Shown here piece after piece: positions 49,622-57,436 of a DNA stretch of 64,000 nucleotides (positions are counted from its first letter, which is position 1; each line of letters starts with the position of its first letter). The stretch is from sequence record NC_048016.1; one strand, given 5' to 3'. The translations under genes were made by a program, and so were the position numbers. The notes beneath the pieces were generated by a model. The model did not search any database, had not been told where the DNA came from, and saw nothing but the letters and a program-made list of their open reading frames with translations.

Positions 49622-50059
49622 ATGGTCGCGAAAATTAAAGTAATCAAAACTGAAGAAGTAAAACATATCGCCAACGGTATTCTGTTGGAGCGTCCGCTGT
49701 CGGACTTCGCTAATCCCGACGATCTTCAATCCGCGTTCCGTCGTCTGGTGCGGGGGCTGCTCTACTGCGAAAAAGGTGTGCCGGATACCTCTGGCATGAA
49801 CGCCTTTGATGCACTGTTTCGAGTGAAAACCATCGAGCCCGATCGCGTCTGTGGTTCCATCGTTGATGCCACGGTCGACGTGGTGGATAACAAGGTTGTG
49901 GTGCGGGGTACCTTTGTCCCGGCCGGGCCATTGAAAGAGATGGCAAAGGTCGCGATGGATATCCTCGATGAGCTGCCACTGGTTCCGCGCTACGTGTTGA
50001 ACTACGACGGCAAAATTGCATCGGTTGAGACGTGGGACCTGCTGGACCTGCAGGGATGA
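49622..50059 (+). CDS. Probable catalytically inactive prohead-protease (S80-like) paralog (145 aa)
   Basis: LYCEKGVP ~ LYGE.GHP; R...I...VCGSI; VRGTFVPAGPL ~ G...P.GP.G; LVPR ~ FSIR; ETWDL ~ ITWD; catalytic His and Ser positions substituted. Confidence 0.6.
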   Translation: MVAKIKVIKTEEVKHIANGILLERPLSDFANPDDLQSAFRRLVRGLLYCEKGVPDTSGMNAFDALFRVKTIEPDRVCGSIVDATVDVVDNKVVVRGTFVPAGPLKEMAKVAMDILDELPLVPRYVLNYDGKIASVETWDLLDLQG

Positions 50060-50259: not shown

Positions 50260-51245
50260 TGCCGACGTATATTGCATTAACTGGCGGGTTGGATTCAACG
50301 TGGTGTTTGGTCAACGGTAAGAAGGCTGGAAACAGTCTGGAGCCTGTGGTGTTTAACATGGGCAACGGCATCAACGCGGTTATCATTGAGTATCTGTTGG
50401 GTCGTGAAATGGTACGTCGTCTCTGGAAGGATAAAAAAGGTGACGTGATGCCCCACCATGCGTGGGGTAAGCAAAAGCTCGGCGGGTACATTTTCACTAA
50501 CAACAATACGCCGACCATGCGCATGATTCAACAGGGGCGGGTGGTCAATGGTCTGGCACGGGTTGCCTGCGATGATAGCCGTATACGTGACCCGATTCAT
50601 TGTATCGTTGGCTGGCATCGGGATGACGCGTTCGAGAACAACGGTGAGTACGGTGATTGGTCACTGGACGACTACAGTAAGCTCAAGCAGTTGTTTGAAT
50701 TGCAATGCTACTTTGCAGACACGGGTCGCCGTATTCAGCCGCTGGCCACCCCGGCGTGGGATAAGCCGAAGATTGACATGTGGAGCGAGTTACCGGACGA
50801 CCTTCGCCCACTGGTCACGGTTCACTGGCATAACGCGTTAAGCATTGTCTATTCGGACAAACGCAAGGAGTTGCTGATTTGTGCCCAGCCGACGTATTTC
50901 TCACACAAGGTTAATGAGTACATCGCGTTGGGTATTGACCCAACCGCCGCGTGGATAATCAAAGCGGATAACAACCTTCTGCGTGAACTTGCTGCCCCGC
51001 TGTTTAAAGAGGATGTGTTACCGCTGGCTGTCAAGCACATGCTGAATGAAGTACCGGCGGGTGCTATCGCGAATATGGAAAAAGTCCATATCAGCGACAA
51101 CATCACTATCAACCAAACTTACCCACACACCCGCTGGAGCGTCGAAGGTGAATCAATCTTACGTGAGTTTAAAGAAGACATGGAAGCGGCTTATGACGCT
51201 GCTCTTCAAAAAGAAAAAGCCACAACAGCCCAAGCGGACGCTTGA
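50259..51245 (+). CDS. PP-loop (adenine nucleotide alpha-hydrolase, QueC-like N-terminus) protein (328 aa)
   Basis: YIALTGGLDSTWCL = SGGxDS PP-loop; ATPAWDKPKIDM ~ TPL...K..I; no QueC zinc CxxCxxC. Confidence 0.65.
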   Translation: MPTYIALTGGLDSTWCLVNGKKAGNSLEPVVFNMGNGINAVIIEYLLGREMVRRLWKDKKGDVMPHHAWGKQKLGGYIFTNNNTPTMRMIQQGRVVNGLARVACDDSRIRDPIHCIVGWHRDDAFENNGEYGDWSLDDYSKLKQLFELQCYFADTGRRIQPLATPAWDKPKIDMWSELPDDLRPLVTVHWHNALSIVYSDKRKELLICAQPTYFSHKVNEYIALGIDPTAAWIIKADNNLLRELAAPLFKEDVLPLAVKHMLNEVPAGAIANMEKVHISDNITINQTYPHTRWSVEGESILREFKEDMEAAYDAALQKEKATTAQADA

Positions 51246-51681
51246 TGATATCGTTCGTGAGTTGTTCGATTCCGAAGACCGGGACATCCCGGCTTTTGCT
51301 TCCGCCATGGGCATGTCCGTGCCTGATTTGTACTTTGCCGTGAAAGACCCACATCTACGTGGGAACATCAAAGGCTTTGCAGGGCAGGAAGCAAAAATCA
51401 TTATCAACGAACGGAACGATCGCCTCATCTTTGGTCGCAACGCCGTCCTCGTCAGCATGCCCGATCGGGGCAACTTGCGTTTCGAGAACCTCGAAGAGGG
51501 GATTGACCACCTTCGCCGCATGGCAAAACCGGACACACCGATTAAGATGTTCCCACACGATGTCAAAGAGCACACTGTGATGTTCTCGCTGACTGACGTG
51601 AAGGGCGACGCGGCTTTGGGCGTAATCTCGCAGCTCTCTAAAGCGCAGTTCGAGAAAATACTGGAAAGGTTCAAGGGGTAG
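51193..51681 (+). CDS. Hypothetical protein, possible N-terminal HTH (162 aa)
   Basis: ATG 51193; IPAFASAMGMSVPDLYFAV. Confidence 0.6.
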   Translation: MTLLFKKKKPQQPKRTLDDIVRELFDSEDRDIPAFASAMGMSVPDLYFAVKDPHLRGNIKGFAGQEAKIIINERNDRLIFGRNAVLVSMPDRGNLRFENLEEGIDHLRRMAKPDTPIKMFPHDVKEHTVMFSLTDVKGDAALGVISQLSKAQFEKILERFKG

Positions 51682-51683
51682 CA

Positions 51684-53426
51684 ATGAAAATACTGGTGAG
51701 CTTGCCGGAGATGACGCCATCAGATTTTGTGGCGTTGTTTGATAAGCACGTTTACGGGCAGGAACAGGCCAAGAAGATGCTGGCCATTGCCCTGCGTAAC
51801 CGCTACCGCACGTCGCTCTTACTCGGGCAAGACCGCTTTAGCGTGAACAAGCAGAACGTGTTATTGCACGGCCCGACGGGTACCGGTAAGACGGCCCTGA
51901 TTCGTGTGTTACGCAAAGACCTCGAATTGCCGGTGCTGGAGTTCGACATGACATCCTTTACGGAGTCGGGCTACGTCGGGCGTAGCATCGAAGAAATTGG
52001 CAAGGAGCTGAGGGAGCTGACCAAAGGCCTGAAGATTCCGAACTGGTATCTCGAAGCGCACGGTCAGCCCATTAACAAAGAGCCGGAAAGGAAGTACACC
52101 CGGGCGGAGTTAGAGGAACTGCAAAGGCAGGAGCTGCGCAACGACATGCAGGAGCGGGACGAACACCGTAAGCGTTTCAATGAAGCGTACAACGCCGCCT
52201 TGGACGAACTCAAGGCATCGGGTGTGCTGGATATCGAAAAGCACGGTACGTACCTCAGCGTCTACTATTACCGCTGCCTGTTGTTAGGACTTTACCGCTC
52301 TAACCACATTGAGGATGTATCGGGGCTGCAAGAACTCACCACGCTTAACATCGATGGTCTGGATTTCGGTGCTGTGTTTAAGGATACGGCCCGTTTGAAA
52401 GAGTTGTCCGATCTGGAGAACAGTGATGAAGAGCTCAGCGAAATGGGTGAGGCGGAACTCGAAGCGGAAGTGGCAGCCATCATGGCGCGGTTACTCAGGA
52501 CAATGGGTCCAATTGAGTCTGAGTTTATTGAGCTGGGTCGTCGTTACATGAACAGCTATCCGTCCATGGCAACGGCCCCTCACGAAACGTGGGCACAGTT
52601 CGCTGACCAGTTTGAGGAAAGTGATGATGCGTTGCGGCCCATCGGTTTCAGAGCGGTACGTGTGGAAGACCCTGAACTGCACGCCCTGACCTTGTTGCAT
52701 AGCGACATTGAGCTTGCAGAGAAACAGCTCACCACCTGTGACGATTTTTCACACTACGTTGACGACGACCTCTGGGTGCTGCCGAAGTTTGAGCAGTTAA
52801 GTAAGGAAGCCATTGAAGCGCAAGAAAAGAGCGACAGCCCGAAACGACGTATCGACCCCAAGTCGTTTGTGGAGAACTTCGCGGTGGTATTCTTAGATGA
52901 GATTGACAAACTCATTGAAGAAGACACGACCCGAACCCACGTCTCGCGTTCTGGGGTACAGCGCAGTTTATTGAAGATGGTCGAAGGCGGAACCTACCAC
53001 GGTATCGACACCACAAATATCTTGTTCGTGGCCGCGGGCGCGTTTGCCATTTCTCCTATCAGTAAACTGATGCCGGAGCTGCAAGGTCGTTTCCCACTGC
53101 GGGGCCGGCTGAACGCACTGGACGCCGATGCGTTTGTGCACATCTGTAAGATGACGGGCAGTGAGTTCCAAGGTCACATCGCGCTGATGCGTACTGAGAA
53201 TGTTCAGGTCAAGTACGACATGGACACGTATCAAGTGATTGCTGAACGCACCCTTGCCCAAAACATGGTGGACAATCTCGGTGCCCGACGTCTGGGTGCG
53301 GTGATTAATGCCATCTTCCAACCTGCTATGTACGAGCCGGAGAAATACCGTCAAAACGGTTTTGATATCCGCGGTGAAACCTTACGAGCCTTGAGTAAAA
53401 CAGATGACGGAAAACAAAAGCATTAG
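51684..53426 (+). CDS. hslU: HslU (ClpY)-like AAA+ ATPase with enlarged I-domain (580 aa)
   Basis: VYGQEQAKK.LAIALRNR, GPTGTGKT, FTESGYVG, VFLDEIDK, GVQRSLL..VEG, ILFVAAGAF, PELQGRFP, NLGARRL. Confidence 0.92.
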   Translation: MKILVSLPEMTPSDFVALFDKHVYGQEQAKKMLAIALRNRYRTSLLLGQDRFSVNKQNVLLHGPTGTGKTALIRVLRKDLELPVLEFDMTSFTESGYVGRSIEEIGKELRELTKGLKIPNWYLEAHGQPINKEPERKYTRAELEELQRQELRNDMQERDEHRKRFNEAYNAALDELKASGVLDIEKHGTYLSVYYYRCLLLGLYRSNHIEDVSGLQELTTLNIDGLDFGAVFKDTARLKELSDLENSDEELSEMGEAELEAEVAAIMARLLRTMGPIESEFIELGRRYMNSYPSMATAPHETWAQFADQFEESDDALRPIGFRAVRVEDPELHALTLLHSDIELAEKQLTTCDDFSHYVDDDLWVLPKFEQLSKEAIEAQEKSDSPKRRIDPKSFVENFAVVFLDEIDKLIEEDTTRTHVSRSGVQRSLLKMVEGGTYHGIDTTNILFVAAGAFAISPISKLMPELQGRFPLRGRLNALDADAFVHICKMTGSEFQGHIALMRTENVQVKYDMDTYQVIAERTLAQNMVDNLGARRLGAVINAIFQPAMYEPEKYRQNGFDIRGETLRALSKTDDGKQKH

Positions 53427-53730: not shown

Positions 53731-53756
53731 GGAAACCTTAACCTTTAGGAGTGTGT

Positions 53757-54137
53757 ATGTCAGCCTTACGAGTATGGACAATTCAGATGGGCCAGTGGCG
53801 TAAAGCCGTGGAGAAAGACATACCCCTCCTGAATATTACAATCAAGTCCGGTGAAGCTATCTTTGCACCGGACTGGGATTTCTTGATGACGTATAAAGAT
53901 TCCGCCAAAACCCCCGAGGATGAACGCATTTACACTCGGGCGTATGCCGCGAAGATTAACCGTAAACTCAAAGAATTCCCGAATAAGTTTTCAGATATAT
54001 TTAATAACAGTGAGATAGCCTTAGCCTGTTATTGTCCGGCCGGTGAATTCTGTCATCGGCATTTGTTTGTCAAAGTCCTACAACAGCTCGGTAAGCAACT
54101 CGGTAGAGAAGTTATTTACATGGGCGAAATCACTTAA
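53757..54137 (+). CDS. DUF488/YeaO-like protein (126 aa)
   Basis: AIFAPDWDFL..YK, IALACYCPAGEFCHRHL; ATG 53757 behind AGGAG. Confidence 0.7.
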   Translation: MSALRVWTIQMGQWRKAVEKDIPLLNITIKSGEAIFAPDWDFLMTYKDSAKTPEDERIYTRAYAAKINRKLKEFPNKFSDIFNNSEIALACYCPAGEFCHRHLFVKVLQQLGKQLGREVIYMGEIT

Positions 54138-55928: not shown

Positions 55929-56267
55929 ATGTTCGGTTGGTTCCGACATTACAAACAGTTAAAGGAAGAGCACGCCGTGTTAACCGAGACCACGGAGTTT
56001 CAGGCTCAACTGATCGACGTGCTTCGTGAACAGGTAAAAGCAGCCACCGGTCTCGCGAACACACAGCGCAACACCATAGACCTGCTGAGCAAGAACCGCG
56101 ACATAAATGAGCGGACACTTGATCTGGTGTTGACCATACTCGCCACCGCAGTCTACGAGCGACGTGACCCACTTGACGCCATTGGTCGGGTGTTTAGAGC
56201 GATGTCACCAAAAACCTGTGCTCGGGTTGCAAAATTAATATTAGCTGAAAGGAGTAATAAATGTTAA
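55929..56267 (+). CDS. Coiled-coil hypothetical protein (112 aa)
   Basis: GGAGA RBS; heptad pattern. Confidence 0.7.
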   Translation: MFGWFRHYKQLKEEHAVLTETTEFQAQLIDVLREQVKAATGLANTQRNTIDLLSKNRDINERTLDLVLTILATAVYERRDPLDAIGRVFRAMSPKTCARVAKLILAERSNKC

Positions 56268-57436
56268 AACCACGCAAGACCCGTAAGAACCGTGCTCAAA
56301 TAACGTTCCGTGAAGACGGGGGAACTACTTACTACTCCCCGAACTGCAAACCCCTGAAGCACACTAAGGAACAAATTGATACCCTGGCGAAAATAGTCTT
56401 GCAACGTCCCGCCAGCATTTGGTACGGCTTGCGTGCGATACAAGGGCACAACAACCGACCGGACTATCCGTATCATGCTTTACGGGCAATGTCGGAGAAA
56501 GAATGGAACTTCCATTGGCAATGGAAAGCCTTATCGCGCGCCGCACATGTTGACCAAGTGGAACAGTGTGCTCTTCGTGACGAAGTTAACCCACTGGACT
56601 GGTCTTGGCAGCCTGAGTTCCTGCAAAACTTGGATTACCTCACCCGCAAGGCGTCGCTGACCGATTACCTAATTGGCTTCGACCCGGGCCGTCCTGAAGG
56701 TTCAGCGATGGCGATGGTGGTCAAAGGTCGTCAGCCGGGGCTGTTCTCCGCAGACGCTATTCGTACTGGTAAATCGGACTGGCAGTTACACGCTGCAATA
56801 GCGCAAGGGCCAGATGCGGTGAAGGAACTTATCGCACAGCGCCTTGCTAAGCTGCCTGACACGGAGATGCCTCTCAACCGTGAACGTTGGGCGGGACTGA
56901 TAGATGAGAACCAGCCCGTGGCAAAGGCATCGCGGATGCCACTACCAGCAGGCAGACTCAAGATGTCGCGTGAGTTTGTCGTCTCAGAGAACAGCCTCGA
57001 GCGCGGGGGTTTTGAACACACGGTGGGCGGCAACAAACCTATCGGTGTTCACCTCAAGCAGTCCGTGCCGGTCCTGAATAATCCTGAACTCGTAGGGGTT
57101 GACCCTTATTCCCCAGACTTAACGACTGAGCAGAAAGCGGCCATCGTTGCAGAAGCCAAAATTAACTCAGCTTACTTCTTCAGTATTCTAAGAAACCCAG
57201 CACCAGACGGGAGCAGAACCACGCCGTTCACGGACGTTGAGAAGCAAGAGATTCAACTGCATTACGAGTATCACCACCCCTACCACAACCTCGATGTCTC
57301 CACGAAGTATTACTTCCCGGTCATTCCATCGGATGAAGTGTTTGCATTTCCGGGTCGCGGCATGACGCCGTTCACGCCACAGCATGACCCTGACCATCTG
57401 AATCTGCCACTGGGTTCTAAACTCGAAGACGAATAA
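56261..57436 (+). CDS. Mosaic hypothetical protein containing a terminase-N-terminus-like segment (391 aa)
   Basis: AAGGAGTAAT RBS; LNNPELVGVDPYSPDLTTEQKAAIVAEAKINSAYFFSILRNP; no Walker motifs. Confidence 0.55.
   Translation: MLKPRKTRKNRAQITFREDGGTTYYSPNCKPLKHTKEQIDTLAKIVLQRPASIWYGLRAIQGHNNRPDYPYHALRAMSEKEWNFHWQWKALSRAAHVDQVEQCALRDEVNPLDWSWQPEFLQNLDYLTRKASLTDYLIGFDPGRPEGSAMAMVVKGRQPGLFSADAIRTGKSDWQLHAAIAQGPDAVKELIAQRLAKLPDTEMPLNRERWAGLIDENQPVAKASRMPLPAGRLKMSREFVVSENSLERGGFEHTVGGNKPIGVHLKQSVPVLNNPELVGVDPYSPDLTTEQKAAIVAEAKINSAYFFSILRNPAPDGSRTTPFTDVEKQEIQLHYEYHHPYHNLDVSTKYYFPVIPSDEVFAFPGRGMTPFTPQHDPDHLNLPLGSKLEDE

Follow-up and report, generated by a model that had tools for sequence, protein, structure and literature searches.

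An HslU homologue of Erwinia phage Wellington with an enlarged acidic insert and no HslV-docking tail, a candidate protease-independent unfoldase

The stretch of DNA analysed here, called the window, comprises 64,000 nucleotides of sequence record NC_048016.1 and is contained in the genome of Erwinia phage Wellington (MH426724.1, 244,950 bp), a jumbo phage that infects the agent of fire blight, where a window coordinate plus 62000 gives the record coordinate. Positions 51684..53426 (+ strand) hold an open reading frame (ORF) with an ATG start and, included in these coordinates, a TAG stop. Its product of 580 amino acids is 100% identical to Wellington gp148, which was deposited as a 'putative heat shock protein ATPase subunit HslU domain-containing protein'. 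We describe below the gene and its neighbours, all of which lie on the + strand where window coordinates are given, and we examine the possibility that gp148 is an HslU-family AAA+ ATPase that works free of a peptidase.

The protein is an HslU homologue. Among solved structures, a PDB sequence search matches gp148 to Escherichia coli HslU (E 2e-50) in two blocks, wherein residues 8-111 correspond to HslU 2-105 and residues 387-553 correspond to HslU 238-411, leaving the 275 intervening residues unmatched. ClpX is a distant second (E 1e-30 to 1e-26) that matches the N-terminal block only. The best family for gp148 is PHROG 4339 (561 bits, E 7e-168), with residues 9-573 aligned to positions 4-535 of the 552 in the profile. 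This score, together with the E value to the HslU structures, indicates that the ORF and its motifs did not arise by chance. The PHROG 4339 family is already annotated as HslU-like, with 'function unknown'. On the NCBIfam HslU equivalog model TIGR00390, gp148 scores 222.3 bits, which is below the curated cutoff of 362.45. An AlphaFold (AF2) monomer model of the protein has a mean predicted local distance difference test (pLDDT) score of 86.7, and a Foldseek search with the whole model places HslU/ClpY on top (E 1e-19 to 1e-15).

For comparison, we used 86 bacterial HslUs returned by a protein search and a phage clade consisting of 25 proteins of 572-586 amino acids. When the gp148 model is searched against viral models by Foldseek, a 580-residue member of this clade ranks first, followed by the MadMel protein, which belongs to the RAY type described below, and then by a protein of Klebsiella phage Miami.

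The two HslU-like blocks carry a complete set of motor motifs. The N-terminal part of the large AAA+ subdomain (residues 1-111, 51684..52016), which aligns to E. coli HslU 2-105, includes Walker A (residues 63-70, 51870-51893) and the GYVG pore-1 loop (residues 96-99, 51969-51980). The rest of the AAA+ module (residues 387-553, 52842..53342) aligns to HslU 238-411 with invariant columns, and includes Walker B (residues 401-409, 52884-52910), the arginine-finger motif ELQGR (residues 465-469, 53076-53090) and sensor 2, GARRL (residues 533-537, 53280-53294). In an alignment of 48 sequences (26 phage and 22 bacterial HslU) all of these motifs are invariant, including the G, Y and G columns of the pore loop. 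Over the AAA+ module, gp148 and Salmonella HslU are ~32% identical. Codon differences between Wellington and the related phage Kwan over residues 1-553 comprise 34 synonymous and four non-synonymous changes, a pattern by which the gp148 motor is judged to be under purifying selection.

The region between the two blocks (residues 112-386, 52017..52841) is a 275-residue insert that is specific to the phage clade and is predicted to be all-helical. The distance from GYVG to Walker B is 301 residues in gp148 and 300-319 across the 25 clade proteins, compared with a bacterial median of 167 (range 130-222, n = 86). The insert is also strongly acidic, having an isoelectric point of 4.6 and 58 aspartate and glutamate residues against 30 lysine and arginine residues, for a net charge of -28. 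Net charge ranges from -18 to -30 in 25 of 25 clade members, versus -7 to +5 in the 86 bacterial HslUs. In the AF2 model the insert has pLDDT values mostly above 90, and forms long helices at residues 140-178, 184-205, 228-246 and 256-289 along with a cluster of short helices. Wellington and Kwan differ in this region by eight synonymous and two non-synonymous codon changes. Since synonymous changes far exceed non-synonymous ones over residues 1-553, the insert is judged to be under purifying selection like the motor.

The insert occupies the position of the HslU I-domain, between the pore loop and Walker B, and shows no detectable homology to it. Searched alone, it matches no PDB sequence and no Pfam family, and a comparison of a profile of 25 phage inserts with a profile of 87 bacterial I-domains gives an hhalign probability of 0.2%. 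A trace of I-domain homology that had been suspected from G180 and a PxG motif in anchored alignments is rejected on this independent profile-profile test. An earlier note on this stretch, made from the sequence alone, had reported intact Walker A and B motifs, pore loop, arginine finger and sensor 2, and an acidic segment of 'about 290' residues that is unlike bacterial HslU. These features are all confirmed, with 301 residues as the measured length. The note had further called the I-domain 'replaced', and here only part of the claim stands. The insert is without detectable homology to bacterial I-domains, but it might have either replaced the I-domain or diverged from it past recognition, two histories that the sequence cannot distinguish.

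The protein ends with a short, polar and variable C-terminal segment (residues 554-580, 53343..53423) where the HslV-docking tail would be. Binding and activation of HslV by HslU are determined by this tail and by an aromatic residue therein (PMC4106860, PMC6429459). In 86 of 86 bacterial HslUs, sensor 2 is followed by 46-49 residues ending in [YFH][IV]L. The corresponding number is 43 in gp148 and 32-43 in the 25 clade proteins, whose polar ends differ from phage to phage and match [YFH][IV]L in none of the 25 cases. Thus, the activating tail that the earlier note found to be lacking in gp148, whose terminal residues are as that note gave them, is lacking throughout the clade. In an outlier, the 546-residue metagenomic relative P0026, the insert measures 254 residues and sensor 2 is followed by 56, also without a [YFH][IV]L end. 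The last 27 residues of gp148 differ between Wellington and Kwan by two synonymous and four non-synonymous changes, from which the tail is judged to evolve freely. Its last 20 nucleotides and the stop codon, together 23 nucleotides, overlap the start of gp149, which complicates the reading of selection on the tail.

The tripeptide 'IGF' at residues 320-322 was rejected as a ClpP-docking loop because other clade members do not conserve it and its location is wrong for such a loop. There is likewise no ClpX-type docking loop in gp148, in which the stretch from the beta-strand to the arginine finger does not exceed the short one of HslU.

A related possibility is that gp148 docks on HslV of the host through a non-canonical surface and thereby retargets HslV proteolysis to substrates chosen by the insert. 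The protein is an HslU homologue, its hosts are Enterobacterales, which carry hslVU, and a Salmonella hslVU locus was found. Moreover, in alignment a gp148 proline is adjacent to the position of an HslU proline for which contacts with HslV and with the tail have been reported (PMC4106860). However, the tail is the known element for binding and activation (PMC4106860, PMC6429459), and gp148 lacks the tail motif and has a C-terminus that is 5-16 residues shorter, variable and unconstrained. Also, if gp148 resides in the phage nucleus like the RAY type (PMC10299810), host HslV would probably be absent there. On balance, we consider such docking very unlikely.

Among 50,697 phage records, the architecture of gp148 is confined to ~24 distinct jumbo phages of 220-250 kb, which represent five lineages and infect Erwinia, Salmonella or Cronobacter. 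This distribution argues that the tail loss is not a frameshift. A sequencing frameshift at the 3' end was one of two explanations that the earlier note had named as fatal to its proposal, and we reject it also because no alternative frame near the stop codon provides an HslU-type end and the longest homopolymer there is four nucleotides. The same spread bears on whether the gene is merely a decaying, functionless remnant of a captured hslU. Its accessory status and absence from phage SPN3US would fit such a fate, but ~24 phages from five lineages keep the ORF intact, its catalytic motifs are invariant, synonymous changes strongly outnumber non-synonymous ones, and the gp148 model is confident throughout. 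Decay therefore seems extremely improbable.

One gp148-type protein cluster (P0010; 586 residues, 135 member sequences) carries the label 'AAA family ATPase [Salmonella enterica serovar Saintpaul]' and derives from contigs of ~11 kb. It seems that Salmonella assemblies commonly contain DNA of jumbo phages.

The nearest proteins outside the gp148 clade (phmmer, 224-320 bits) form a sister group comprising CR5, Derbicus, EarlPhillipIV and Phobos, together with database relatives of 723-742 residues. Like gp148, they are encoded in the same genomic block and lack the tail motif. However, their inserts are ~400-420 residues long with a charge of -8 to -15, their pore loop is GYQG, and in CR5 no gp147-type gene lies upstream.

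The second explanation named in the earlier note was a cognate phage HslV. In a tblastn search with Salmonella HslV (E<=10) across all phage records, neither Wellington nor any related jumbo phage is matched. An HslV profile, made from five diverse sequences, finds nothing among all six-frame ORFs of the Wellington genome (best E 1), and no peptidase of the HslV kind is annotated anywhere in the 244,950-bp record. The absence of hslV, previously noticed in the window, thus extends to the whole genome. No cognate HslV was found in Wellington, either by sequence genome-wide or by fold for the positional candidate gp147.

The strong tblastn matches to HslV are bacterial contigs filed as phage records. 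Several records filed as phages, namely OR844988.1, OR849164.1, OR846616.1, AFYI01000005.1 and others, hold ordinary bacterial hslVU operons; they include a 386-kb 'Staphylococcus phage' and Salmonella whole-genome shotgun contigs. Such entries look like bacterial DNA, and they inflate the apparent counts of 'phage HslV/HslU'.

Annotations of Salmonella phage pSal-SNUABM-04 (MT710307.1, record 103180-107877) also merit attention. This phage was reported to have HslV genes and to lack HslU (PMC7823757). However, ORF116, assigned as HslV in that paper and in the record note, matches neither Pfam Proteasome nor the HslV profile, and it has no counterpart in Wellington. Conversely, ORF121, labelled 'putative DnaA protein', is an HslU-like protein and has been misannotated. 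On the sequences, the published statement appears to be reversed.

The gene directly upstream, gp147 (51193..51681, 162 amino acids, phrog_11712), ends three nucleotides before gp148. It drew our interest as a divergent HslV given its hslV-like position, its size and its Met-Thr start, but this identity is refuted by profile comparison (hhalign 0.3%) and by fold. The confident AlphaFold model (pLDDT 87.7) begins with a bundle of five helices, after which comes a small alpha/beta domain. A Foldseek search against PDB gives no significant match, the best E being 0.077 to a protein that is not a peptidase, with no peptidase among the matches. Synteny, profile and model together leave gp147 as a candidate cofactor and not a protease. 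A gp147 gene is directly upstream in three of the five lineages, represented by Wellington, Machina/Huxley and ChrisDB. A 750-residue repetitive protein (P0128) that matched gp147 is an unrelated repeat protein. Although the ORF list offers a 211-residue form starting at 51046, all homologues agree with the annotated start at 51193, which gives an overlap of 53 nucleotides with the end of gp146. Considering this overlap and the 23 nucleotides shared by gp148 and gp149, the genes gp146-gp149 look like one tightly packed transcription unit.

The conserved block around gp148 comprises a GNAT gene, a Dam methylase gene, small genes, a phrog_6965 gene and then the HslU-like gene. A protease candidate of another kind, gp144 (49622-50059, 145 amino acids), belongs at full length to phrog_7478, a family labelled 'head maturation protease' (E 7e-37). 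Its score on Pfam Peptidase_S80 is borderline (23.0 bits, cutoff 23.4) and covers about one third of the profile. Its labels differ between GenBank (hypothetical) and RefSeq (head maturation protease). Homologues of gp144 occur in 30 phage records, SPN3US included, and in many genomes a gp144-like gene lies within ~2 kb of the HslU-like gene.

It is conceivable, then, that gp148 feeds an unrecognised phage peptidase, such as the prohead-protease-like gp144 family located within ~2 kb. Consistent with a partnership are the phrog_7478 membership, the borderline S80 score and the fact that gp144 homologues adjoin or lie near the HslU-like gene in SPAsTU, SPLA3, MET_P1, pEa_SNUABM_29 and pSal-SNUABM-04. 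However, SPN3US and the SPFM phages keep a gp144-like gene in the block with no gp148-type match listed at E<=1e-20, only about a third of the S80 profile is covered, and we know of no docking element for the protease fold of gp144. Because SPN3US has a gp144-like gene without an HslU-like gene, gp144 is rejected as an obligate protease partner, and its proximity is better explained by shared synteny than by partnership. We regard a supply of substrates to gp144 or another unrecognised phage peptidase as very improbable.

Several annotations in and beyond this region differ from, or add to, what our searches indicate. The gp150 gene (53751-54137) is labelled 'putative GIY-YIG catalytic domain protein', but in Pfam it matches DUF488-N3a (E 1e-8, above the cutoff). 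SPN3US and pSal-SNUABM-04 also have a DUF488 gene in this block. Two genes carry the label 'putative terminase large subunit', namely gp156 (window 56261-57436, 391 amino acids) and gp285 (record 236257-238365, 702 amino acids). Wellington gp28 (L003:11348-13636, outside the window), labelled hypothetical, codes for a full-length divergent family B DNA polymerase (PF20286, 983 bits).

A second type of phage HslU homologue is the 'HslUV-like protease' of Agricanvirus, which includes RAY gp116, Desertfox gp116 and the MadMel protein; we took Desertfox gp116 to be of the RAY gp116 type on the basis of the same genus and the same gene number. Like gp148, these are HslU homologues of jumbo phages that have an enlarged insert and no [YF]IL end. 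They are further alike in belonging, as accessory genes, to nucleus-forming Erwinia jumbo phages without HslV. In contrast with gp148, the Agricanvirus insert is ~218 residues long and has a charge of +6, the pore loop is GYYG, and 72 residues follow sensor 2. In phmmer searches this type scores up to 200 bits with bacterial HslU versus 86-105 bits with gp148. Because it is closer to bacterial HslU than to gp148, there are probably two phage HslU lineages. These two have probably reached the same tail-less, enlarged-insert design, an apparent convergence.

A GFP fusion of RAY gp116 co-localises with the phage's DNA within the phage nucleus, and the gene was described as accessory with an unclear function (PMC10299810). 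This localisation result exists only for the RAY type and not for gp148. To transfer it to gp148 would be unjustified since RAY gp116 represents a separate lineage, and so we treat it as a lead only. Wellington is listed among the phages that encode chimallin and form a nucleus (PMC10299810, Prichard et al.). We looked for the Wellington chimallin gene by comparing the sequences of gp93, gp95, gp34 and nine further large ORFs with Pfam and PDB and found nothing, and the nucleus-forming status of Wellington therefore rests on that publication.

These observations favour a model in which gp148 is an active, protease-independent AAA+ unfoldase or remodeller that functions without HslV or another known docked peptidase. 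The motor is intact and selected, the docking motif has been lost clade-wide, no phage HslV is present, and the insert is conserved but novel. Taken together, these features make the model probable in our judgement, and we have much less confidence in any particular class of substrates. Of the two functions put forward in the earlier note, the sequence evidence thus favours the protease-independent unfoldase with new specificity, and co-assembly with host HslU to redirect or poison HslUV is unsupported.

In HslU, the I-domain lies on the face that points away from HslV and participates in the handling of substrates. By analogy, gp148 would assemble as an HslU-like hexameric ring driven by ATP, and its six acidic inserts would form a crown on the substrate-entry face bearing about -170 charges per hexamer. 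Such a crown would select basic substrates, such as host or phage proteins that bind nucleic acids. The motor would then unfold these proteins, or strip them from complexes, without feeding them to a protease. In three lineages, gp147 may serve as a cofactor or adaptor.

Some considerations weigh against this model. The hexamer, the ATPase activity and the unfolding are all predicted from homology, the class of substrates from charge, and the role of the insert in selecting substrates from its position. Non-canonical docking of gp148 on host HslV or on another peptidase would be compatible with the sequence. In addition, gp147 is absent from the upstream position in SPAsTU-type and CR5-type loci and thus is no universal partner. 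Finally, SPN3US keeps the syntenic block without an HslU-like gene, which identifies this gene as accessory.

The conservation of the motor and insert is also informative regarding the co-assembly proposal, according to which gp148 joins host HslU in mixed hexamers that cannot activate HslV, thereby poisoning or redirecting HslUV. Tail-less subunits would in principle weaken HslV activation, and the two proteins share ~32% identity over the AAA+ module. However, mixed hexamers are not expected at 32% identity. A poison needs only its interfaces, yet lineages that are only ~40% identical all keep an invariant pore loop, Walker B, arginine finger and sensor 2, and the large insert is conserved and under purifying selection. 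This possibility strikes us as very unlikely. For none of the four alternatives considered here (docking on host HslV, mixed hexamers, a phage peptidase partner and gene decay) did we find positive evidence.

A more specific version of the protease-independent model makes gp148 a compartment-specific unfoldase that would act within the phage nucleus or at its shell, where host HslV would be absent. The DNA-like crown would capture DNA-binding proteins, which the motor would unfold or evict. The captured proteins may include host defence nucleases, nucleoid proteins or the phage's own factors. Alternatively, its role could be to thread certain cargo through the shell, which the literature on import leaves open (bioRxiv 10.1101/2024.03.27.586873). 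We consider this nuclear assignment unlikely as matters stand. If it were true, the tail loss and insert growth in two lineages would constitute a convergent adaptation to life without the protease.

We found no functional study of PHROG 4339-type HslU-like proteins in the literature searched and, to our knowledge and in that literature, there is no comparable analysis of the family. The present analysis adds a quantified account of how the tail was lost across the clade, and describes the insert by its size, its charge and its non-homology. Also new are the exclusion of a hidden HslV, the pairing of gp147 with gp148 and the apparent convergence of two phage lineages. The phage HslU clade and the second lineage provide a natural experiment in which a component of an AAA+ protease has probably become a free-standing remodeller. 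They also point to uncharacterised ATP-driven protein remodelling in nucleus-forming jumbo phages, in which protein traffic and counter-defence are open questions.

Among known systems, gp148 most resembles bacterial HslU/ClpY, as represented by the E. coli and Haemophilus influenzae proteins (PDB 1G4A, 1DO0, 1G3I, 6PXK). HslU is a textbook example of an unfoldase that is tied to one peptidase through its C-terminal tail. gp148 and HslU share the AAA+ fold, the set of motifs and the GYVG loop. In both, the large subdomain is interrupted by an insert at one and the same point, and the small subdomain, which carries sensor 2, is alike. However, the gp148 insert is 1.8 times longer, roughly five to ten times more acidic and without detectable homology to that of HslU, and gp148 has neither the C-terminal HslV-docking tail nor the hslV partner gene, which is usually directly upstream. 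A precedent for an unfoldase without its protease is provided by the protease-free chaperones of the ClpX type, such as mitochondrial CLPX-like proteins (PDB 9YKX), and yeast Mcx1, which is of this type, works without ClpP. The resemblance to ClpX itself is limited. Unlike ClpX, gp148 has no zinc-binding N-domain and no IGF docking loop at the ClpX position, its scores on ClpX models are 127-142 bits against cutoffs of 359-371, and its alignment to ClpX spans only residues 11-110.

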